From Monocercomonoides exilis PA203 (Eukaryota > Protista > Preaxostyla), in NCBI GenBank assembly GCA_001643675.2, contig LSRY02000022.1, positions 682,001-746,000 of the forward strand: DNA of 64,000 nt. Direction: 5' to 3'. The translations under genes were made by a program, and so were the position numbers. The notes below the pieces were generated by a model that saw nothing but the letters and a program-made list of their open reading frames with translations, was not told the DNA's origin and did no database searches. Positions 45,377-62,621 of this stretch are shown in pieces. Within the stretch, counting starts at the first letter, position 1. Every line of letters begins with the position of its first letter.

Positions 45377-48300
45377 TTAGTTGGGAATTTCTGATACCAT
45401 CATGACTACAGCTTTTGACACTTTCCATTCCTTCTGAATTTTTTCTTTCTTTGATTGAGCTCTTGTTCTGATAATAAACCTTTTGTCATATTTTGTATCC
45501 TCTTTTTCCTCTTCCTTTGGTTCTTCAATCTTCGAAGGCATTATTGCTTGGGAGTCGTCGGAAGCTTGGATTTTTTCGTTTCTTTTACTCATATTGTACT
45601 GCTTCTTCACAATTGCAACCTTCTTTTCATCCTTGTTCTGGCTTTCTTTCCTTCCTTTCTGTTCGACTTTTTCAGCGCGCTGTGCCTGCTTTGTCGATAT
45701 TTCTGGTGATGAAGCAATCACCTTGCCCATTGCTGAAGCCAAATCCGCCCTGAAGTAATGTTTAACCAATGTGTTTGTTTGTGGCGAAAGACGAGCAAAC
45801 TTTGCAATCTGCACTGGAGGAATACCTGCCATTGTCAAAGCCGAAATTGAGGCTGCCTTGATTGAGTATGGAGTAAATGTGTCTGGTATCCCGGCGTTGG
45901 TCAGTGCTTCCTTGGCAAGCTTGCGAATCCCTCCTGCTGTCAATGGGGCAAAAGTGTTTGTATTAAGAAGCAGACTGTTTGTGTTTGGGTTAGCTTGTTT
46001 TACTCTCTCCCACAAGGTCTTAATCGCGATAGCAGGACAAATAAGTGGCAAGTCTGATAAATACGGAACGGCAATCTCTGTGCGTGTCTCCGAAGTCTTC
46101 AGTCTCGTGTCAAGATATATTCCTTCTTCTTTAAACCTTGAATTTCTCATGTCTATTCTCTCAAGCTCTGTAAATCTGCAGGCTGAAAATAACATTGTTA
46201 ACACAATCACCTTTATTGTCAGTTGCTTAAAGCTCAATGTCTCATTCGGTCCCTGATCTGCGAAATATTTCAACAACGTCTGTGGGTTCCAAATTTCTCT
46301 GTTTTCTTTTCTCTTTGATCTGTTTGTTCTTCTGAACGCTCTGAATAGCATCTTAATGAGTGGGATATCACCTAAGCACGTATTGAAAACGAGACTGGAA
46401 TAAAAAGAAACTGCAGCTCTTGTTATCTGCAGGCACGTGAGCGACATTCCGCCATTTCTAAGGGATAAAAATACATTAGCGCAATTTGATGCCCAATCGA
46501 ATATATTGTCTGGTATTTCTTTGTGGCCACATTCCTTCCATTGCTTTCCAAAATGTGCAAAGCCAAAGAGGTATCCTTTCCACGTTGTCTCCGCTATTCC
46601 CTTGTGGCACTCTTCTGCAAGATCTGTTGCGAAAGCTTTCTGCTCCAAAGCGCGTTTCCACCATTCTTCTCCGTCACGCTGTATGGATTCAACAACACGA
46701 TCCTCAACCGTCCTGGAGGAAGACTGGCATTCGTCCATTGCATTGAAGGGCCTTTCTGTAACACTTCCTTTTGCAGCTTCCAGTCCCAGCTCCTGTGTGG
46801 TATCGACTTCAAAAGAGTGTCCCAGTTCTGGCCTCTCCAGTTCGGCAGGAGTAAGATCACTTGTGCTTTCATCCTTTTCGCTTTCTGAATCGTTGATACA
46901 ATCAGCGGCACAGGAGGGTGAGCCAAAACAACTTCGTCTTTCCATGGAACCATGAGACCATCCTCTGCAATCGGACTGTTGATGCCACACCATCTCTCCA
47001 ACTTGTGATTGTGACTTGCTGCAAACGCATCCAGTGTCGGTGTCCTCTGAGCTATCTTCAGAATCTCCAGCAGCTCTTCTGCTCGCACATCGTAATCCCC
47101 TGCTCTCTCTAGTCTTGACAGAGCGTCTGCCCTTGTGTTCTTGATGCCTGGGATGTGTGTGGCTCTCATCTCTATATGTGTTTCTTCCTTCCATCTCCAT
47201 ATCTTTCTCAGTACGGGTCTCAAGTTCTTTCCTGCATTCCATCTGTTTATATTGTAGACAACAGCTGTATTGTCCGATCTCAGATGCAGTCGACTGATTC
47301 CGTTCCTCTGGAGCGCTGGGCCAAAATGGTTGAGAGCTAACCACACCGCCATTAACTCCCTGTAATTCGATGACTGTTTCGCAAGTTGATGTGGAAACCG
47401 ATTGTGTGCGTCTAACAGTTGATTGTTGATTGACAGCGTAGCCCCCCACGCCACTTCCGATGCATCTGTTGTAATCACTGCCTGTGGGACAAACACTGGA
47501 ATTAGCTTGCGTTGAGGGCGTGATTTCAATATCTTCCTCCATTGCAGAATCTGTTGGATAATGGATGCGTTGATTCTCATCTGTCCGCTCCATCCTTGCA
47601 ACTCCAATCCTTTTTGTAAGAGGCGATACATGGAATGCAGCCATAGGGAAGTGTCTTGCTGAACGAAACGGATTGCGCTGAGTTTTCCAATGAACGAGGC
47701 GAAATCTCTTATTCTCACCTTCTTGGCTTTCACTGCTTTCACTTTCCATTTGTCCACTTCTTTCATCAATGCAATTCTTCTGTCTTCCTTCAACTGAACC
47801 TCCATTATTTCCGTGTTCCATCTGTATCCGAGGTAAACAAACTCTCTGCTGGCAGATAGGTGGCTTTTTTCCTTGTTCACTAGCAGCCCAAGTGACTCCA
47901 AAAACTGCACAATCTCTTCCGTAATTCTTCTTAAATGCATTTGATCTTGATGTAATATTAGCAGGTCGTCCAAATACGCAACAAGCCTCACATGCCATCT
48001 TCTTCTTATTTCCTTCGTCACTTTCCTCATCACATGCGTGAATATTCTGGGTGCATCTACGAATCCGAAAGGCATTCCTTTGAATACGTAATCTTTTCCG
48101 AGAAATCTGAAAGCGAGATATGGTTTGAGATTCTCTGAAACTGGGAGAAGATAATATGCCTGATGAAGGTCTATCGTCACTGCCCAATCTTCTTTCAGTA
48201 ATATTCTCTCCACTGTTCTCTCGCTGTCGCATTTGAAATGCGTTCTGAGGACCGCTGCATTCAAACGACGACAGTCTAAGATCTGCCTCCATGTTCCGTT

Positions 48301-48673
48301 CTTTTTCTTGATCAGGAATACGTTGTTCCTGTGTTTGACATCTTCCTGATTTATCTCCTCCACTATTCCGGTCCTCGTCTGTTCCTCCAACAAATCCATG
48401 AAGGCTCTTCTGTGCTCCCCGCTTGTTAGCTCGGCTCCATCTCTGTACGACATCTTTGAAAGTTTCTCTCTTTCTCTTCTGCTCTTCCACATCGCTTGGA
48501 TCCCATTTCGGATCAAATCTCCTCCTCCAATCTCTTCCCATGCCTTTAAGAACAGCACCGTCCTTCCTCCAATGATCTGATCTGGCTGCGACTCTTTCTC
48601 TGTTGCTTTCGTTAATTCCTTTGAAGACCCCGACTCCGACTGGACCATCCTGCTGCTCTCGTTCGGCTTCCAT
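45377..48673 (-). CDS. DIRS ORF3: tyrosine recombinase with a long N-terminal extension overlapping pol
   Basis: ACRFTEL (R), LKTS (K), ICPAIAI, PYSIKAAS (HxxR position) and VKHY (nucleophile Y). Confidence 0.88.
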   Translation of the reverse strand: MEAEREQQDGPVGVGVFKGINESNRERVAARSDHWRKDGAVLKGMGRDWRRRFDPKWDPSDVEEQKRKRETFKDVVQRWSRANKRGAQKSLHGFVGGTDEDRNSGGDKSGRCQTQEQRIPDQEKERNMEADLRLSSFECSGPQNAFQMRQRENSGENITERRLGSDDRPSSGILSSPSFRESQTISRFQISRKRLRIQRNAFRIRRCTQNIHACDEESDEGNKKKMACEACCVFGRPANITSRSNAFKKNYGRDCAVFGVTWAASEQGKKPPICQQRVCLPRIQMEHGNNGGSVEGRQKNCIDERSGQMESESSESQEGENKRFRLVHWKTQRNPFRSARHFPMAAFHVSPLTKRIGVARMERTDENQRIHYPTDSAMEEDIEITPSTQANSSVCPTGSDYNRCIGSGVGGYAVNQQSTVRRTQSVSTSTCETVIELQGVNGGVVSSQPFWPSAPEERNQSTASEIGQYSCCLQYKQMECRKELETRTEKDMEMEGRNTYRDESHTHPRHQEHKGRRSVKTRESRGLRCASRRAAGDSEDSSEDTDTGCVCSKSQSQVGEMVWHQQSDCRGWSHGSMERRSCFGSPSCAADCINDSESEKDESTSDLTPAELERPELGHSFEVDTTQELGLEAAKGSVTERPFNAMDECQSSSRTVEDRVVESIQRDGEEWWKRALEQKAFATDLAEECHKGIAETTWKGYLFGFAHFGKQWKECGHKEIPDNIFDWASNCANVFLSLRNGGMSLTCLQITRAAVSFYSSLVFNTCLGDIPLIKMLFRAFRRTNRSKRKENREIWNPQTLLKYFADQGPNETLSFKQLTIKVIVLTMLFSACRFTELERIDMRNSRFKEEGIYLDTRLKTSETRTEIAVPYLSDLPLICPAIAIKTLWERVKQANPNTNSLLLNTNTFAPLTAGGIRKLAKEALTNAGIPDTFTPYSIKAASISALTMAGIPPVQIAKFARLSPQTNTLVKHYFRADLASAMGKVIASSPEISTKQAQRAEKVEQKGRKESQNKDEKKVAIVKKQYNMSKRNEKIQASDDSQAIMPSKIEEPKEEEKEDTKYDKRFIIRTRAQSKKEKIQKEWKVSKAVVMMVSEIPN
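46594..48648 (-). CDS. DIRS ORF2: reverse transcriptase + RNase H + Dam-like methyltransferase-type domain
   Basis: ILDCRRLN, IDLHQAY, MPFG and YLDD (RT); TTDAS, NYRELMAV, SDN and ADALSR (RNase H); LDAFA...W...HPPVPLI...LPNW (MT-like). Confidence 0.95.
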   Translation of the reverse strand: MVQSESGSSKELTKATEKESQPDQIIGGRTVLFLKAWEEIGGGDLIRNGIQAMWKSRREREKLSKMSYRDGAELTSGEHRRAFMDLLEEQTRTGIVEEINQEDVKHRNNVFLIKKKNGTWRQILDCRRLNAAVLRTHFKCDSERTVERILLKEDWAVTIDLHQAYYLLPVSENLKPYLAFRFLGKDYVFKGMPFGFVDAPRIFTHVMRKVTKEIRRRWHVRLVAYLDDLLILHQDQMHLRRITEEIVQFLESLGLLVNKEKSHLSASREFVYLGYRWNTEIMEVQLKEDRRIALMKEVDKWKVKAVKAKKVRIRDFASFIGKLSAIRFVQQDTSLWLHSMYRLLQKGLELQGWSGQMRINASIIQQILQWRKILKSRPQRKLIPVFVPQAVITTDASEVAWGATLSINNQLLDAHNRFPHQLAKQSSNYRELMAVWLALNHFGPALQRNGISRLHLRSDNTAVVYNINRWNAGKNLRPVLRKIWRWKEETHIEMRATHIPGIKNTRADALSRLERAGDYDVRAEELLEILKIAQRTPTLDAFAASHNHKLERWCGINSPIAEDGLMVPWKDEVVLAHPPVPLIVSTIQKAKRMKAQVILLLPNWRGQNWDTLLKSIPHRSWDWKLQKEVLQKGPSMQWTNASLPPGRLRIVLLNPYSVTEKNGGNALWSRKLSQQILQKSATRE

Positions 48674-50402: not shown

Positions 50403-51620
50403 TAATGAATTTCAGTGAATTAAAATCCGTCGTTACGGCTAAATTATTCAGTGAAATCAATGAAATGATCAAAGAAAAGAAAATGCCATTGGATTGTGCA
50501 TTGGTGCTATTGAAGCATATTGGATATCATAGTGAACTGAATAATTTTTATATAAATGGCTTTGATGAATCTTCATTGAGAAAAAGGATTCGAGAGATGA
50601 TTGCTGATGAAAATGAGGAAAATGTTGAAGATAATGAAAAAGTGATGATTGATCTTTGTGAATGTTACCTGCTGCTTTCAAGTTTTGATTTTTTTTCACC
50701 CAAAAAGTTGATTTTAGTTTGTATGTCTTGCCTTCTGAAAGTTGCATTAAAGAAAGAGGAAGATGAGGAGACACAAAAAGAAGTGGAAATGGCTTTGCTG
50801 GCTTTGTGTAATACTGAATATTATGAATGTTTATTAATATTTCGTTTATTTAATTTTTGAATATTTCTCATTCTTTGATTAGAAATTAGGAAATGAGCTG
50901 TATTTTAATTGGATCAAAGAAATCATCAAACATCACCAGGAATATCACAATCTAACTCAACTTGCGTATCAGTCTGCTTGGTACATTTTGTCTTTCCAAT
51001 TGCCCAAAGTCGAAAGTCTGGAAGCAACAGCTGTTAAAGAGCTGCATTTTGGAAGAGAAGCAGAAAAAGCAATGGAAGATCTGTCAAAGTGTGTGGATTG
51101 GAAGAGAAAAAAGAGAGAAAGAGAGAAAAAGAAGTGAAAGAAGCGTCTATTATCGAGAAATGGCTCTATGCAACTTTTTATTATTTATCCGAATGCAAAT
51201 AGTGGAATGAAGAATTTACTGGACTAATTAGCAGCATTGTGGGGTTATTTCGAGCATCAAAGGAAAATAAAGGAAAAATTTGCGATAAATGTTTTTATTT
51301 GTTGAAAGAAGCAGCAGACAAAAGAAATTCGAAAATTGATACTTTTGCGAAGGATGGCGTCATAGATGTATTTTTGGAGGAAATGATGCAATCAACTTTG
51401 GAAGATAAAAATATGTCTGATTGTTTGGATTTCTTTTTGAGCATTTCAATGTAATTAGAAGGAATGAAGGATGATGAAAAGGAAGAGGAAGAAAGAAAGG
51501 CAGCAAAAAAGGGGATATGGAAAAGATGGAAGAAGATGGATACGAAGACTGCGTTGTCAAATTTTTGAAGTTAGGTCTTAATTATATGTTTAGAGATGAC
51601 AATACAGTAATAACTATTGA
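50403..51620 (+). pseudogene. 3' part of the interrupted helical family gene
   Basis: MNFSELKSV...EETQKEVEMALLAL, then an intron, then IKEIIKHHQEYHNLTQLAYQSAW. Later frameshifts and stops. Confidence 0.75.
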
Positions 51621-53123
51621 AGATTTTTTTGTGCATCTGTAAAGCGAAGGCTCATTTCGGTTCCATTCCTTTTGTTGAAGTCACAGAAAAGCAGCAGAAG
51701 AAGAATGGAATGGAACGAAATGTCAATAGAATCACAGAAGAGGCAGATAACAGTAAATGAACAAACAAAGAGAAGAGAAGAGAAGGGAGAATTACATGAG
51801 AGAAAATGTTTCAATCCGAAGCAGCATCTTTGGCTGAGAAAAAAGCATATCCAACACAAATTGTGGATTCTTCATTTATTTCAGTCGGCCTTCTCATAAT
51901 CATCATCTGCTTCAACTTCTTCATTTCATTCAACCTTTCTCTCACAAAGCAACTATCAACATTTCACAATTAATCCATCTTCTTTTTCTTCTTTCTGTCT
52001 GTTTGTTTATGACATTGCACTTTTTATTGAATTCCATCAAATCTCATGAAGTTTTGAAAAACCATTCACAACCTCATTTTGGGTGCAACATCCCTAAAAC
52101 ATTCACAATTTCAGATCTTCATCTTCCTCATCTTCCTCATCTTCGTCACAATGAAAACAGTCATTACAATTCATTTTTTGTAGTCATTAAAGAAATAACA
52201 CATATTTCAAATCCTTCACAAAAAGCTCTTCAACAAACATGAGAAACAACACAGGCAATTTATCTTCACTTTTCTTCTTTCTCCTTTTTTCTCAGTTTCA
52301 TCATCATGTTTGTGATCATCAAAGAATGCCTTTGAATTTCAATTAGAATTTCATCTTCTTCTTTAGCATTTTGATGGAGCGACCTCATTCTTTCGAAATG
52401 CATCAAAAAAATCATGTTGTCCGAGGAAACTTGGCTGTCAAAGAATGAAGGAAAAAAAAAACAAATGAAAACACTTGGACGGAAAATAACAACCTCTCAA
52501 GAGAATGTTATTTCTTTGTCTTCTCTTTTTGCGAAGTCTTCTTTTCTCTTGCTCATTTGGAATTGAGAGCGGATATTATATTCTGAATGACTGTTTGGTG
52601 AGGCATGTGGGAAGGGAAAGAGAAGGTGGGGAATTTGGGAAAGATGGACATTTGTGGAATTGAAGCAGCAATTGGCCAGCCAGTTGACAAAAGAAAGTCT
52701 GATTTTCTTTTCTTTTCACATTCAAATTTCAAATACTCTGATTGTGAAATGGATTTTGATTCATCTTCGTTCAATGAGATCAAGTGAAGCTTGGAAAAAC
52801 AAGAGAAGAAGCTGGTGGAACACAAAACTTCTCAAAAGATATTGATGAGGTTGCTGCAGAAGATAAACAAACTTTTTCAAGAGTTTTTTTTCAAGCAACT
52901 TTTGTGTTAACAAGTTATTTGAAGAAGATTATTTTTGGAAGAAAATTGAAATTTTATCTTTTTCATATTTTTTGTTTCTTCATTTTGATGAAATGAAGTG
53001 GAATGAAAAACAAAATGTCTTAAAAATATCATCCAAACGAGCGTTTGTTTTCGCTCTTGTGAAATGAATAAAAAAAAGAAAGAAAGAAAAAATTCTTAAG
53101 ATATTAAAATTCAATTCATTTTT

Positions 53124-54578
53124 TCAAATAAACACAAAATAATTAAAAATGTTAGACGATAAATAACTATTACATTTCCTATAAAGAAAATCAAACATTC
53201 CATGAAAGCTAATGATGATATCTTCGTATCCTTCTTCTTCCATCTTTTCAAATGCTTTCCTTTTGGCTGCCTTTCTTTCAACTTCTTCCATTTTATCTTT
53301 CTTTTCTTCTTTTAATCTTGTTGAAAGAGATTCAAAAAATTGAAATCTATCAGATGTTATTTTATTATCGAGTGTTGATTGTTGAAGTTTCTCCATAAAC
53401 TCGTCAGCCACTCCACTCTTCAGCAAGTCATCAATCTTCACGGCTCTGTTTTCTGCAACTGCTTTGAATAGATATATGCACAATTCGCTAATATCTCTGT
53501 TATTCACCTTTGCCGCTCGAAATATCTGAAAAATGCTTTCAAGAACACCAACAAATCCTTCGATTCTCGATTCACACAAGTCCAGAAATTCACACAGCAT
53601 ATCCAGCCATCTCTCTAATAGAAGCTCTTCTTCTGTTTTTTTTTCTCTTTCATCTTCTTTTCTCTTCCAATCCACATTTCTTTTCAGTTCTTCGATTTCT
53701 CTTTTTGCTTCTCCAGCGAAATGCAACTCATTTAGAATCTTTCCATCAAAATCATGGCAGACCAATCCTCTTATCAAATGGTACCAAATTAATTGATAGG
53801 AAAGCTGTGTCATATTGTTATGCTCCTGATGATATTGGATTATTTCTCTGATTTCCTTCAAATACAGTTTTTTATCAATCCCCTATTTTAAAATAAAGGG
53901 AAAAAATACTAACATAACAAAAAATGTAAAAGAAGTGAACATACACAATATCCATCAATGCAACAAAAAGCCAATAAAGCCATTTCAACTTCTTTCTGTT
54001 CTTCTTCGCTTTCCTCTTTCCTCAAAGCCGCTTTTGGATAGCAAGATTTGAAAATTGATATTAATTCCGATGAAAATCCATCCTTAAGCAAAAGACAGCA
54101 TTCGCAAAGATCTCTTATCAGTGTTTCGTTCTTCTCCTCTTTTTTCTTTAGATTTTCCTCAACAATCATCTTTTCAAATCTTTCACTCAATGAAGAATAA
54201 TCAAATCCATCAATCATAAACTCATTCAGCACATTGCAATATCCAACATGCTTCAGCAGCAAAACAACATTCTCTGTAGGAAATTTCTTTTCTTCAATCA
54301 TTTTTTTTATTTTGTTGAATATTTCTTCTGTGAAAACAGATCTGAATTCTCTTTTACTCATTTCATCTGTCAGTGCATTCATCACTTCGATTTTCTGTTT
54401 CTGTTCAGCGCTGGTGCAATATTCCAGCTCAGAATACAATTCTGCAAAAGGGATTCAAAAAAACAAAATTTTTGTTCAGAATTGTTCAATTCAAATAAAA
54501 GAGCAAACTCGAAAACTTCTCGGCTTTGTTCATCATCTGCACTCTTTCTTCAGACTTTTCATTATCGCGTACACTCAT
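53124..54578 (-). CDS. Lineage-specific helical (ARM-like) family protein, 3 exons, apparently intact
   Basis: ATG 54578 (MSVRDNE...KFS), GT-AG intron ~54508-54443, exon ORF 53909-54439, second intron, exon ORF 53124-53861. Shared motifs KEVEMALLA and EIIQYHQEHxN. Confidence 0.7.
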
Positions 54579-55929: not shown

Positions 55930-57090
55930 AACACTTACAGAATAATCAGAAATATCCAACGATAAATGATCATGATATTCTTCGTTGAGAAAATCAAAGG
56001 TTTCATGAAAACAAACAATTACATAATCGTATTATTTTTCTTCATTCTTTTCAAATATCTTTCTTTTTAACTCTTTTCGTTTTGTTTCGGTAGTTTCTCC
56101 ATCTTCCTTTTTATTCAGTCTTTCAGAAATATTCAAAAAGAAATGCAAATGCTTTTCTATTATTTCTTCTTCCATAGCTGATTGATTCATTTCCTCCAAA
56201 TAGAGATCAACAGCTCCGCTTTTCAACAAGTCTTCAACATTCACAGCTCTATTTCCTGATGCTATTTTTAAAGGTCGTGTGCAAGAGAAATGAAAATCTT
56301 TTTTATCATCATTTGACACTCGAAGCACTCGAACAATGCTGCTGAAAATGTCACAATTCTCTTCGTTCCTCTTTTGGCTAAAGCCGAAGAAAAAAATAAG
56401 TGTTTGGTTCTATCTCATTGAAAAATTCGCTTCATTCTTTTCTTTATCTATCTCCTCTCATTTTCCTCTCTTCCAAGCAACACTTCTGGTTAACATTTCT
56501 TGTTCTCTTTTTGCCTCCTTCGACAAATGAAGAATATTTTTGAAAACAACCTGAATAGTATTTTTATTTTTGGTAGCATGAAGATCAAAAACGGCAAAGC
56601 ATACTGACATACAAGCTTATGAAGGTTGTAATTCTCATGATGATATCGGATTATATCTTTGGTTCTCCAGGTTAGTTCCCATTCCACTTTATCTAACAAA
56701 CAATGAAAAATAAAAAAATAAAATCATTTGTGAAATAGAAATGTTCAAATCCAAACAATATTGATGCGACAAAAGGTAGAAAAGCCATTTTTACTTCATT
56801 TTGAGTATCCTCGTTTTCCTCTTTGCTTAATGCAGCTTTCAGAAGGGAAGGCCACATATCGAAAGCAATAACGATTGGAATTTTGAATATAGTGAAACAT
56901 CGCAATCACAAAGATCAACAAGAAAGTTTTTGTTACTTTTCTCTTCTTTTCTCTTTTTATTTTCTTCATCAGAATCTTCCAACCTTTCAAACAATTTTGA
57001 AAAAAGGCAAAGAAATAAAAAAAAAATTCTTTCATTTTGTGTTTAACTGCATTATGACTGCAATCAGGTGAACTTTTCAGAGGCAATAGC
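55930..57090 (-). pseudogene. Decayed paralog of the helical family
   Basis: KEENEDTQNEVKMA, DIIRYHHENYNL and VEDLLKSGAVD motifs occur in broken frames. Confidence 0.7.
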
Positions 57091-57368
57091 CTCCTTTATT
57101 TCCGCAGTAATTATTCTTTTGACAAAAAACCATAAATTGGTCTGATTAAAAGAAAAATTCAAGAAATTACACTTTATCATTTAACAACATAATCATTGAA
57201 TCGTTGTGGTATCTTTTTCATATCGATATTTTCAGAATATTAATAGGTATTGCAACTTTCAAACTGTCATTTTGAAAGATTGTTATAGAAGTTCATATTT
57301 ATCGATTTTTCTGTTGGCTGAAAAATTTTCCTTCGTAATTCGATAAAACATTTATGCATAAAAACGAA

Positions 57369-58781
57369 ATGGAGATGCTACCAGATGATAAATGTGTTGG
57401 TATGATTAAAGAAATTCAAGTGACCGAACAGTTTTCGAGTATGAATTCTTGTTTGTTTTCCGATTTGAGAAGTTATAAATATTGTTTTTGATGCTTTCTG
57501 AAGAAATAGTGATGGAGTTGGAGCATTGTTGGGAAAATGAGCAAACGCAGAAAATCGAGAAGATGATAGGATTGGTAGAGGAAACGAATTCGTTCGAATT
57601 TTATTCAGTTTTCACAAAAGAGGCATGCAACAGAATCGATAAAATGATTAATGAAAAGAAATTTGGAGAGGAAAGCACTGTGCTGCTGCAATAGGGGGTA
57701 GGACGTTTGATGAATCTGAGAAACTTATCTCGAAAAGGCTACAACGATTCTTTGCTGTGCGAAAGGATAAAGAGAATGATTTTGGAAGAAGAGAATAAAA
57801 AAGAAATGAAGAATGGGAAGTATCTGGCGGATCTTTGTGAATGTTTTCTTTTCACAAGATATCAAATGGGTGACCCACCAAAAGAATTTCTGACAATTTG
57901 TGTGCCTTGCCTTTGAAAGGTCGCATTGAACAAAAAAGAGGATAAAGACAATTAAAAAGAAGTGGAGATGGCTTTGCTGTCTTTGAGTTGCATATACGAC
58001 CATTATGTATAAGAACTTCATGCATCATTGTAAAAGTTTTTGAATTTCTTTCTCCTTTTTATATTAGAAAATTGAAAGAGAACTGTATTTGAATGAAATC
58101 AAAGAAATCATCAAATATCATCAGGAGCATCGCAATCTGACACGACTTGCATATCAATCTGCTTGGGATTTATTGGTTAATCAATCACGCATAAATAGAA
58201 GTTTGGATGACGTTATTATGAACGAGCTGCACTTATTTAGAGAAGCTGCAAGAGAACTTGGAGAACTGACGAAATGCGTGAATCTGAAAAGAGAAGAAAA
58301 AAGAGAAGAAATTCGAAGAATGAATGAAGCGGAGACAATAATGATGAAGTGGATAAAAACTGTGGAGGCATTTTATCTGCATCTCAGGTCTTGGAAAGAG
58401 GAATATGCTGAACTGATCAGTTATCTTGCCAAGCTGGCAAAAGCAATGAGAGAAAGCGAGAGAGATATATATAAATCGCTCACCAGCGCTTTTGAGCTCA
58501 TTTCAACTTGGAAGATTTTCAGAATAGATGCTATGATGAAGTGTGGGGTTGTTGATCTGGTTCAAGATGAAATACAGCAAAACACATCGGATGATATGAT
58601 GACATATGATTGCATGATGTCTTATCGTGTTCTTTCCAGAAGGCTGAGAGAGAATGATGATAAAGGATACAACGAAGTTGGTTGGGTGGAGACGAAGAGA
58701 GAGGTGTTACAAAAGATGGAAGAAATTGGATGCGAAGATATCATCACATGTTTTCAGAAAATTTACACTTTTATTTTATAA
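57369..58781 (+). pseudogene. Paralog of the helical family (5' part broken, last exon open)
   Basis: LEHCWENEQTQKIEKM, LADLCECF and EIKEIIKYHQEHRNLTRLAYQSAW. In-frame stops in exon 2. Confidence 0.7.
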
Positions 58782-59523
58782 AGGAAAGTTTTTGTTTTAA
58801 AAATTTGTCTTATTTCCATCTTCATTTCTTTTTCTACCACCAGATTGTTTTGTGGGTTATTTTCTAATTTGATTGGTTTCAAAATTAATTTCAAACTTTC
58901 TTTTAACAATTATTTCATCAATTCAGAACTCAATCAACAGAAAAATATAATTTTTGGATATTTTTATTTTATTCAAAAAATGTCGAAATATATAGAATTT
59001 TCGAACGACAACAACAACAACAAAAAAAAAAAAAAAAAAAAAAAATGATGCAATGAAGGAACAGCAGCACAAAAAACATTCAAATACAAAAAGAAAACGG
59101 AAACACTTACCCTTCACTATCTTTAACAAAAACAAAAAATTCAGTAACATCAGGTTTAATTAGATAAATTTTGAAAATAGTCTCAGAAAATAAACAGAAA
59201 ATTATTTATACATCGATAAATGAACACGTCTATTTATTTTTTCATAATTTGAAAATATTTAAAAAATTAGAAAATTTAAAGTATCAAAAATCAAAATGTT
59301 CTCAGAAAATTGTTCATTTTTAAAAAATAAACAATAAATCTGAGTAATAAAAAAATCTGAAAACAAAGCTTCAACATGCCGACACATCCAAATAACTTTT
59401 TCAACCCTTTTCTTTTATTTGAATGTTATGGCTAAAATGAAATCGCACATAAAAAAGATCAAAAAATATTCTTATGGGTGTTTTGATAACACCCATTATT
59501 AAAATATCATAGTATTTATTGTG

Positions 59524-59844
59524 ATGGAAACAAGTGTTGCAATAAAGCTGAACGTAAATGTCGATGTCAATGAATTATTTAAATCGGCATTTAACTTTAT
59601 ATACGGAGGAACAAACTATCAGAAGCAGTCTGTTGATGGCGGAACTTGGATTTCATATACTGACGGTGAACGAATTATTTCATGCTATTTCCATCCATCA
59701 AAGAAACACTCTGCCACTGCGCAAAGCAAACTTTTAGGTGCAGTTATCAGTAACCAACGCTCCATTGCAGAGGCAGGAGAATGGGCTTGCGCCTGCTGCA
59801 AAAAGAAGATGGGAGTTGGACACACCTTCTACAATACATTGTAG
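59524..59844 (+). CDS. Lactococcin 972-family bacteriocin-like protein
   Basis: GGTW...S-x-Y-x-H-x-SKKHSAT...RS-x-A-x-AG-x-WA-x-A...FYN is the lactococcin_972 family signature with the expected spacing. 106 aa from ATG 59524, intronless. Confidence 0.8.
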   Translation: METSVAIKLNVNVDVNELFKSAFNFIYGGTNYQKQSVDGGTWISYTDGERIISCYFHPSKKHSATAQSKLLGAVISNQRSIAEAGEWACACCKKKMGVGHTFYNTL

Positions 59845-60228
59845 AAGAATTCACAATAGAATTTAGTCATACCCTATATTTTTGTCTATTTTTTGGTTTT
59901 GTATTATATTTTCATTTATTTTGGCATTTGAGCAATTTTTGTGAAACATAATAAATAATAAGTTGTGCATTAAATCGAAAGGAAAATGAAGGTTAGAGGG
60001 GAGGAGGATGAAAATTAATAAAGAAATATTCTTAAAAAAATTATTGAGGATTCAAGGTTCTAAAAAAAATTTATAATTAAAAAAAAAAAATAAAATAAAA
60101 TAAATAAATAAATTAATTAATTAATTAATTAATTAATACGTATATATTTATTGAAACGATAAAAATTCTGGTAAGATTCAAGAGAGCTGGTACCAAAAAT
60201 TCAATATAAAATTAGCAAAAAATAAATA

Positions 60229-61424: not shown

Positions 61425-62621
61425 CTAAATCATATTAAAAATAAAAATATGGTAAAATGAAGAAGAAAAAAAGTCACTAAAAATAAACAATAATGGTATT
61501 AAAATGGAAAATAAGCCTCCTAAATCTGCTAATAATGAAGTAATTGTGGGTGTAGGTGATTCTGTAGGATTCAGTCTATTTTTCATTTTTGATAAGTATC
61601 TCTCGTTTGTTATCTTTCTGGCTTCTATTTTTCTCATGTGACTAGCATAAAGCTCCTCCAAAAACAATGTATTTGCTTCTGCATCTTTCTTTGTGAGTGG
61701 ATTTTGTAATATATGGAAGTTAGTGAGGCAGCATGCTACGCAAAAATAGTCTGCAACCTTCACAACATCAAATAACCAAGGTTTTCTGAAGACGGTGAAG
61801 AGTGTTTTGAGTCTTCCGAAAAATCTTTCCACGATAACGCGATGTGTAGCCAATTCTGGTGTTCCCACGGGCTTTGTGATGATAGCTTCAAGCTCTGGTT
61901 TTGCTCCAATGTAAGCAGAGTCAGCTAAAATCTTTGCTCCTCCCAGCCTATGCTCGAATGTCGGGTAGTGCTCTTTGAAGATAGTGAAATCATGTGTCGA
62001 ACCAGTGTAGATGGAGCTGATCGTGCTTGCTGTCCCCACCTTGGGGTTCACTCCAACCTCCGCTTTGACACAGTAAATATGATGCTTTCCTGAATAGTAT
62101 TTTTTTCCATATTCCAGCTTTCCTCCCGGTCTGTTTGTTGGTATGACAGTGCAATCAACAACAATTCCCACATCTTTCAACTCCTCCAAACGATCAGGAC
62201 GAAAAGACAGAAAAAGTTCTGTCAGTTGATGTTTGATAGATGTTGCTGTTGAGTGCAGCAAACGAACAACCGCACTTTGTGTTTCATATTTGGATTTCGC
62301 CAGCAACAATGTCATTGTGAGCGAGCCATGATGAAGAAAATTTATTAGTAAGAAAAGTTGCTCCTCCAAAGAGTCAATTGCTTTGACCTTTCCACGATGA
62401 GGAAAAGCATTATCAGAAAGAAGCTGAGAAAGAAGATCAAATTCTGAACGACTAAATCCAGTCAATCTGAAAAATCCAGTTGACTTATCCAAAAATTTCG
62501 AACAAGCTATTTCGATAATTGTTGTGTTTTTTTCTTCTTTTGTTACATGAATATGTGTCGGAATGACATTCCTTTTTTCTACACATTTCAGAACATCCAT
62601 AAAAGTGTTTTGAGACATCAA
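61425..62621 (-). CDS. DDE_Tnp_4 (Harbinger/IS5-like) transposase, exon 1
   Basis: VVDCTVIP, YYSGKHH, GSTHD, LADSAY and RVIVERFFGRLK. Confidence 0.9.
   Translation of the reverse strand: MMSQNTFMDVLKCVEKRNVIPTHIHVTKEEKNTTIIEIACSKFLDKSTGFFRLTGFSRSEFDLLSQLLSDNAFPHRGKVKAIDSLEEQLFLLINFLHHGSLTMTLLLAKSKYETQSAVVRLLHSTATSIKHQLTELFLSFRPDRLEELKDVGIVVDCTVIPTNRPGGKLEYGKKYYSGKHHIYCVKAEVGVNPKVGTASTISSIYTGSTHDFTIFKEHYPTFEHRLGGAKILADSAYIGAKPELEAIITKPVGTPELATHRVIVERFFGRLKTLFTVFRKPWLFDVVKVADYFCVACCLTNFHILQNPLTKKDAEANTLFLEELYASHMRKIEARKITNERYLSKMKNRLNPTESPTPTITSLLADLGGLFSILIPLLFIFSDFFSSSFYHIFIFNMI

Follow-up and report, generated by a model that had tools for sequence, protein, structure and literature searches.

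The bacteriocin lactococcin 972 (Lcn972) binds lipid II and blocks septal cell-wall synthesis, according to the account of Martinez et al. 2008 given in PMC12612818. Laterally acquired Lcn972-like peptides have been described in Trichomonas and other metamonads (PMC12612818, Mol Biol Evol 2025; bioRxiv April 2025) and were presented as the first case of a bacterial antimicrobial-peptide gene that was acquired laterally and is conserved in Metamonada. That study proposed a deep transfer followed by within-species duplications, pointed to two invariant histidines, overlaid AlphaFold models on the structure 2lgn and took the N-terminal extensions of the metamonad proteins as likely signal peptides. 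Lcn972-like genes of T. gallinae respond to co-culture with E. coli, and recombinant Lcn972-like domains impaired the growth of E. coli (PMC12612818). Table S2 of the same paper lists a protein of Monocercomonoides exilis, XP_067727518.1. An earlier note on the DNA studied here had left the novelty of its Lcn972-like gene to be checked; the presence of such a gene in M. exilis, and the idea of a laterally acquired family across Metamonada, are already published (PMC12612818).

We analyzed the gene within a window of 64,000 nucleotides (C17:682001-746000) from the Nanopore assembly of M. exilis PA203, which consists of 101 contigs and about 82.3 Mbp with an N50 of 1,379,369 bp (PMC8767320). The explanation that we regard as probable for the locus as a whole is a nuclear gene of the metamonad branch of the Lcn972 family, derived from an old bacterium-to-eukaryote transfer and present as one of two near-identical paralogues, with a putative antibacterial role. 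The gene in the window is called copy A, and the features of the gene and its surroundings are as follows.

59524..59844, plus strand: Lcn972-like coding sequence of copy A, 106 codons plus stop (list of open reading frames, sequence, Pfam PF09683).
59524..59607, plus strand: N-terminal module, residues 1-28, as predicted from phmmer alignments, a motif and hydrophobicity scan, alignments A1 and A2 and the AlphaFold2 model.
59635..59832, plus strand: Lactococcin_972 domain, residues 38-103 (Pfam, invariant columns of alignment A1, fold match to 2lgn).
59950..59958, plus strand: overlapping AATAAA and AAATAA, candidate polyadenylation signals (sequence, end of an RNA contig at 59974).
58089..58781, plus strand: open reading frame of 230 aa, probably an exon, with no Pfam match (Pfam scan, genome family search).
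61425..62621, minus strand: open reading frame of a Harbinger/PIF-type DDE transposase (PF13359 DDE_Tnp_4, E 5.5e-20).
56188..60088 versus C17:1260848-1264779, unstranded: inverted segmental duplication of 3.9 kb that holds the Lcn972-like gene and its upstream neighbor (blastn).
C17:1261094-1261411 (L002 1492-1809), minus strand: copy B, a paralogue 520 kb away whose protein is 95% identical to that of copy A (six-frame search).
C14:2160667-2160977 (L011 about 2166-2486), minus strand: copy C, decayed and 51% identical over residues 8-68 (six-frame search).

Copy A is intact at exactly the position given by the earlier note, with an ATG at 59524 and a stop at 59842-59844 in both the open reading frame list and the sequence, and an in-frame stop lies 24 nt 5' of the ATG. 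The product of ~11.7 kDa has an identical sequence in NCBI and UniRef. All motifs that had been taken to form the full Lcn972 pattern were found, namely GTW (residues 40-42), SCYFHPSKKHSAT (53-65), AGEWACA (84-90) and FYN (102-104), although the last is not strictly terminal, as had been claimed, being followed by TL. The extra cysteines pointed out in the same note are four in number (C54, C89, C91 and C92); the same four occur in copy B, and several homologues have cysteines at similar positions. The sequence of Lcn972 is, to our knowledge, free of cysteines.

Membership in the Lcn972 family is supported by both profile and fold. The Pfam model PF09683 (Lactococcin_972) matches copy A over the entire profile (1-62 of 62) with E 4e-9 and 37.3 bits, at a gathering cut-off of 22 bits. 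The NCBIfam model of the bacterial precursor, TIGR01653, gave 26.3 bits, short of the required 32.1; it was matched only at profile positions 19-95 of 97, so that the region equivalent to the bacterial signal peptide is absent from copy A. Among solved structures, sequence matches were obtained with 9hkj (E 6e-4), which is Formosin D, deposited under the title 'Lactococcin 972 family bacteriocin', and with 2lgn (E 0.25). The designed repeat proteins 5byo and 4yxz, which carry stronger-looking scores, were discarded as relatives because these scores are artefacts of summed sub-threshold repeats.

An AlphaFold2 model of copy A, built from a 59-sequence alignment, has a mean pLDDT of 94.6 and a pTM of 0.88, and is composed of a strand (residues 3-7), a helix (15-23) and seven further strands. 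The top two Foldseek hits for this model are 9hkj (TM 0.75) and 2lgn (TM 0.81). With VIA-align, the model superposes on 9hkj with Z 10.3 over 78 residues (model 29-106, 32% identity) and on 2lgn with Z 8.0 and an rmsd of 1.8 A over 65 of 66 residues (model 39-106, 29% identity), while unrelated rows score Z 4.5 or less. On the strength of these two matches the C-terminal domain can be assigned to the Lcn972 fold with confidence, and the last ~68 residues of copy A are confidently predicted to form the Lcn972 beta-sandwich. The profile and structural matches on which the earlier note made its assignment depend are thus in place. Alignment A1, with 59 homologues, shows H57, H62 and G85 without exception and W87 and A88 in at least 90% of the sequences.

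The leader of ~37 residues had been described as non-hydrophobic, with the Sec signal gone. This agrees with the hydropathy of the N-terminal 35-37 residues, for which the maximal 10-residue Kyte-Doolittle mean, a crude measure of signal peptides, is 1.10, compared with 2.8-3.7 in signal-peptide-like homologues. However, the leader is more than the loose substitute for a lost signal that had been assumed, for its first ~28 residues correspond to a conserved module shared with many eukaryotic homologues. A phmmer search of copy A against 1.84 billion cluster representatives returned 76 matches at E <=1e-3, most of them proteins of ~100 aa. Approximately 34 of the matches align as far as residues 2-10 of copy A, and these homologues have a common architecture of an N-x-N-V-D-V-N-E-L-L motif, a short variable linker and the Lcn972 domain. 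In the AlphaFold2 model, the block pLDDT across residues 1-30 is 87-95. Residues 1-28 lie outside the aligned ranges of 2lgn and 9hkj and are therefore an addition that neither of the two solved bacterial proteins has. Altogether, the first ~28 residues of copy A are predicted with confidence to be a conserved strand-helix module and not a signal peptide.

A hydrophobic N-terminus is present in 13 of 61 short homologues and absent from the other 48. In some of the 13 (P0024 and P0033) the signal-peptide-like stretch is located upstream of the N-x-N-V-D-V-N-E-L-L motif. Two matches with a signal peptide of bacterial type (P0070 and P0073) have no N-terminal module. A separate upstream exon encoding a signal peptide was considered for copy A and rejected: the sole nearby acceptor-like AG, at 59511-59512, is not kept in copy B, the gene is free of joints in the RNA contigs, and dozens of homologues begin just before the motif.

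Relatives of copy A were found in several eukaryotic settings. The S. strix protein KAA6363257.1 (P0008) matches it with E 8.5e-12 and 38% identity, and the closest relative, at 46% identity, is encoded on a very AT-rich contig. Within the contexts sampled, all homologues that have the module, lack a signal peptide and are informatively placed lie on eukaryotic contigs. The homologue contexts include S. strix MAG proteins, one contig that also encodes proteasome PCI and UCH, contigs bearing BspA-like LRR_5 genes, another contig with a gene of the E2F winged-helix type, and another on which RCC1 and EF-hand genes occur. Judging from these sampled contexts, the N-terminal module appears to be restricted to eukaryotes. 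That the nearest kin of copy A occur in other gut protists fits an old bacterial origin.

Tandem repetition of the domain was also seen in the wider family, as four proteins of uncultured eukaryotes (P0002, P0003, P0004 and P0013) carry two to four Lcn972 domains. For instance, P0002 (L008 760-2865) has 701 aa with four Pfam stretches and adjoins genes for a proteasome PCI protein, a ubiquitin hydrolase and GH3.

A tree of 64 short homologues left 31 of its 61 forks open; it neither supports nor rejects metamonad monophyly and indicates no donor. In this tree, the M. exilis protein pairs weakly (SH-aLRT 85) with two metagenomic proteins and not with S. strix. A word-indexed protein search with copy A alone returned only the query itself, and the same search with alignment A1 returned mostly one secreted subfamily.

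The surroundings of copy A consist of repeat families of the host genome. The upstream 230-aa reading frame belongs to a family of which the best 150 of 1,741 first-look candidates were scored, all with E 5e-43 or better and about 40% identity, on many contigs. Further paralogues of it were observed in the window at 50417-54409, and RNA contigs of 34-40 nt are piled at 58075-58141, at its conserved start. A fusion of this reading frame with the Lcn972-like gene was rejected, because the identity of copies A and B falls to 79-86% in the DNA that separates the two genes, where RNA contigs are also lacking. On the other side, the Harbinger element that had been reported to adjoin the gene was confirmed in the DDE_Tnp_4 transposase on the minus strand (61425-62621), which has at least 104 matches across the genome. 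Intact transposase copies of 97-98% identity cluster on contig C62, suggesting recent activity.

The absence of immunity and ABC transporter genes, likewise claimed before, holds for the eight large neighboring open reading frames scanned with Pfam at 45-64 kb, which contain the transposase, a weak integrase-like match and unknowns only. The integrase-like match is to Phage_integrase in a 1,097-aa reading frame on the minus strand (45377-48670), at E 1.5e-4 with 22.1 bits, which does not reach the cut-off of 27.1.

Searched in all six frames, the complete genome (82,301,135 bases, 101 contigs) yielded three Lcn972-like loci, copies A, B and C, on two multi-megabase contigs. In this search copies A and B scored 37.7 and 37.6 bits with PF09683, respectively. 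Copy C is a pseudogene: it has no ATG, its frame changes directly past the H-S-A motif, and an in-frame TGA occupies the position of the second cysteine of the C-C pair of copies A and B. The copy B protein has no exact match in a collection of 15 billion proteins, in which copy A has one, and copy B may be missing from public annotation or be modelled differently there. Since the exact match in NCBI and UniRef belongs to copy A and the collection holds none for copy B, XP_067727518.1 is probably the window copy, that is, copy A.

The two arms of the inverted duplication that contains copies A and B are 92.5% identical over 3,937 blastn columns. The coding sequences of copies A and B differ at 12 of 318 positions and the proteins at 5 of 106 residues, of which four belong to residues 1-37 and the fifth, T46S, to the domain. 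For the whole coding sequence, Nei-Gojobori estimates are dN 0.020 and dS 0.112, a dN/dS of about 0.18 that derives from 12 differences, and for the domain dN 0.006 and dS 0.046. Nucleotide divergence amounts to 15.9% in the upstream intergenic region, 8.1% in residues 1-37, 1.4% in the domain and 0.8% in the first 130 nt of the 3'UTR. Residues 1-37 are significantly more diverged than the domain (Fisher p 0.005). This pattern is consistent with purifying selection on the domain, although gene conversion could contribute to the similarity of the A and B domains, since divergence of the 3'UTR is equally low.

Transcription was analyzed in Logan contigs of four metatranscriptomic runs, all of one study, in which parts of the stretch are represented. 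An RNA contig of 435 nt at depth 78 in run X1 spans 59540-59974, running from codon 6 to a point 130 nt beyond the stop. At each of the 13 sites where it departs from the window it carries the copy B letter, and the contig is identical to copy B. Copy A sequence, coding or intergenic, was not seen at comparable depth in this run. Because both copies reside in one genome and copy A is unseen in X1, carry-over of genomic DNA cannot explain the contig, which is RNA of copy B; the paralogue is transcribed. The AATAAA and AAATAA motifs at 59950-59958 lie 16-24 nt before the terminus of the RNA contig, and the same two motifs have been described in M. exilis 20-30 bp 5' of cleavage sites (PMC8767320). 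No splice joint was found at the Lcn972-like gene in the RNA contigs. Expression, on which the earlier note also made its reading depend, was observed for copy B, but not for the window gene itself in the diagnostic sites of the long contig.

In run X2, one 50-nt piece with the copy A letter at 59659 is part of a contig that doubles back on itself. This 200-nt contig (59640-59809, 'goes back 170') combines the copy A letter at 59659 with the copy B letter at 59754, and may reflect an artefact of the assembly graph, a difference between strains or a recombinant allele.

Two alternative explanations concern the status of the gene. Bacterial contamination from the polyxenic culture, or a chimera formed in assembly, has to be considered, given that M. 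exilis is cultured with bacteria and that the raw assembly required decontamination (PMC8767320). However, the gene family has three loci on two multi-megabase contigs, both flanking families exceed 100 copies spread across the genome, and the coding sequence, with a GC content of 41%, is embedded in AT-rich flanks. A candidate eukaryotic poly(A) signal precedes the end of the RNA contig by 16-24 nt, and the nearest relatives of the protein are on eukaryotic contigs. Taking into account the three loci and the genome-wide repeat families at the flanks, contamination and chimerism are excluded for practical purposes. The claim of a eukaryote-encoded gene is upheld by the same evidence together with the eukaryotic placement of its kin, and copy A is confirmed as a real, intact, eukaryote-encoded gene of the Lcn972 family. 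It is a different matter whether copy A itself is functional or a silent, redundant duplicate on its way to decay, with paralogue B alone in use. The long RNA contig has the copy B letter at every diagnostic site, the third copy has already decayed, and the locus is rich in transposons. On the other hand, the copy A reading frame is intact with only 5 of 106 residues differing from copy B and a dN/dS of about 0.18, Logan contigs drop minor variants, and the X2 piece carries a copy A letter. We consider a silent copy A quite improbable.

According to the preferred explanation, an old transfer from a bacterium to a eukaryote would have founded the metamonad branch of the Lcn972 family, and the 3.9-kb inverted segmental duplication would later have produced paralogues A and B, the third copy having decayed. 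By extension from Lcn972, the M. exilis protein may bind lipid II and block septal cell-wall synthesis, an activity that would be useful to a bacterivorous gut flagellate. We know of no residue-level lipid II binding site defined for Lcn972. Antibacterial activity, lipid II binding and an export route are putative attributes of the M. exilis protein, transferred by analogy. Delivery is the weak point of the proposal, because a protein without a signal peptide has no evident route to bacteria; unconventional release, delivery to the phagosome and release on lysis are candidate routes.

In another alternative, the domain is used inside the cell or for a purpose other than killing bacteria; the protein would be cytosolic, acting for example on intracellular or escaping bacteria, or would have a role unrelated to lipid II. 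Neither copy A nor copy B has a hydrophobic N-terminus, nor do 48 of the 61 short homologues, and the prediction gives the conserved N-terminal module a confident structure. The protein, moreover, has four cysteines but no way of entering an oxidizing compartment. However, a minority of homologues, such as P0024 and P0033, have signal peptides upstream of the same module, which implies that the family acts outside the cell or in a lumen. The bacterial bacteriocins also share the residues that are invariant here, and the T. gallinae homologues respond to bacteria (PMC12612818). On balance, we regard an intracellular or non-antibacterial use as unlikely, though less so than a silent copy A, and retain the antibacterial reading.

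The conserved and, by prediction, folded N-terminal module sharpens the question of how the protein would reach bacteria. As a tentative proposal, which we would not put at even odds, the proteins with the module and without a signal peptide might represent a eukaryote-specific Lcn972 architecture, in which the module is a functional addition (e.g. for export, targeting, oligomerization or auto-inhibition) that enables the protist to use a bacterial cell-wall inhibitor with no need of the Sec route. If lipid II is bound, a ribosomal bacteriocin of bacteria would have been turned against bacteria by a eukaryote, and, if true, this would be relevant to the way gut protists feed on or shape the microbiota.

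When compared with the solved bacterial proteins, copy A shares with Lcn972 of Lactococcus lactis (2lgn) the predicted beta-sandwich and the G-x-W, H-x4-H-S-A-T, G-x-W-A and F-Y-N motifs. In contrast, Lcn972 has a Sec signal peptide and an operon with immunity and ABC genes, and has no strand-helix module. Lipid II binding is experimentally shown for Lcn972, whereas for copy A it is presumed. Formosin D (9hkj) is the best match among solved structures in both structure and sequence, and covers only residues 29-106 of the model; literature found under 'formosin' concerned plant diterpenoids only.

The closest counterparts are the metamonad AMP-Lcn972 proteins, such as T. gallinae TGA_001351900, T. 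vaginalis TVAGG3_0964420 and S. strix KAA6363257.1. Like copy A, they have ~100-137 aa, a C-terminal Lcn972 domain and two invariant histidines, mostly lack a predicted signal peptide and occur as paralogue pairs within species. Copy A belongs to this group as a nuclear M. exilis gene homologous to the listed S. strix protein. The results on expression response and toxicity pertain to the T. gallinae set only, whereas the M. exilis genes are known from sequence and from the RNA of one paralogue. To the published family M. exilis adds two intact paralogues in an inverted duplication and one pseudogene, a structure absent from PMC12612818, as well as transcription of a paralogue and a dN/dS of about 0.18 between the copies. 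Finally, in contrast to the reading of the metamonad extensions as likely signal peptides in that paper, the M. exilis extension is predicted to be a conserved, non-hydrophobic strand-helix module.
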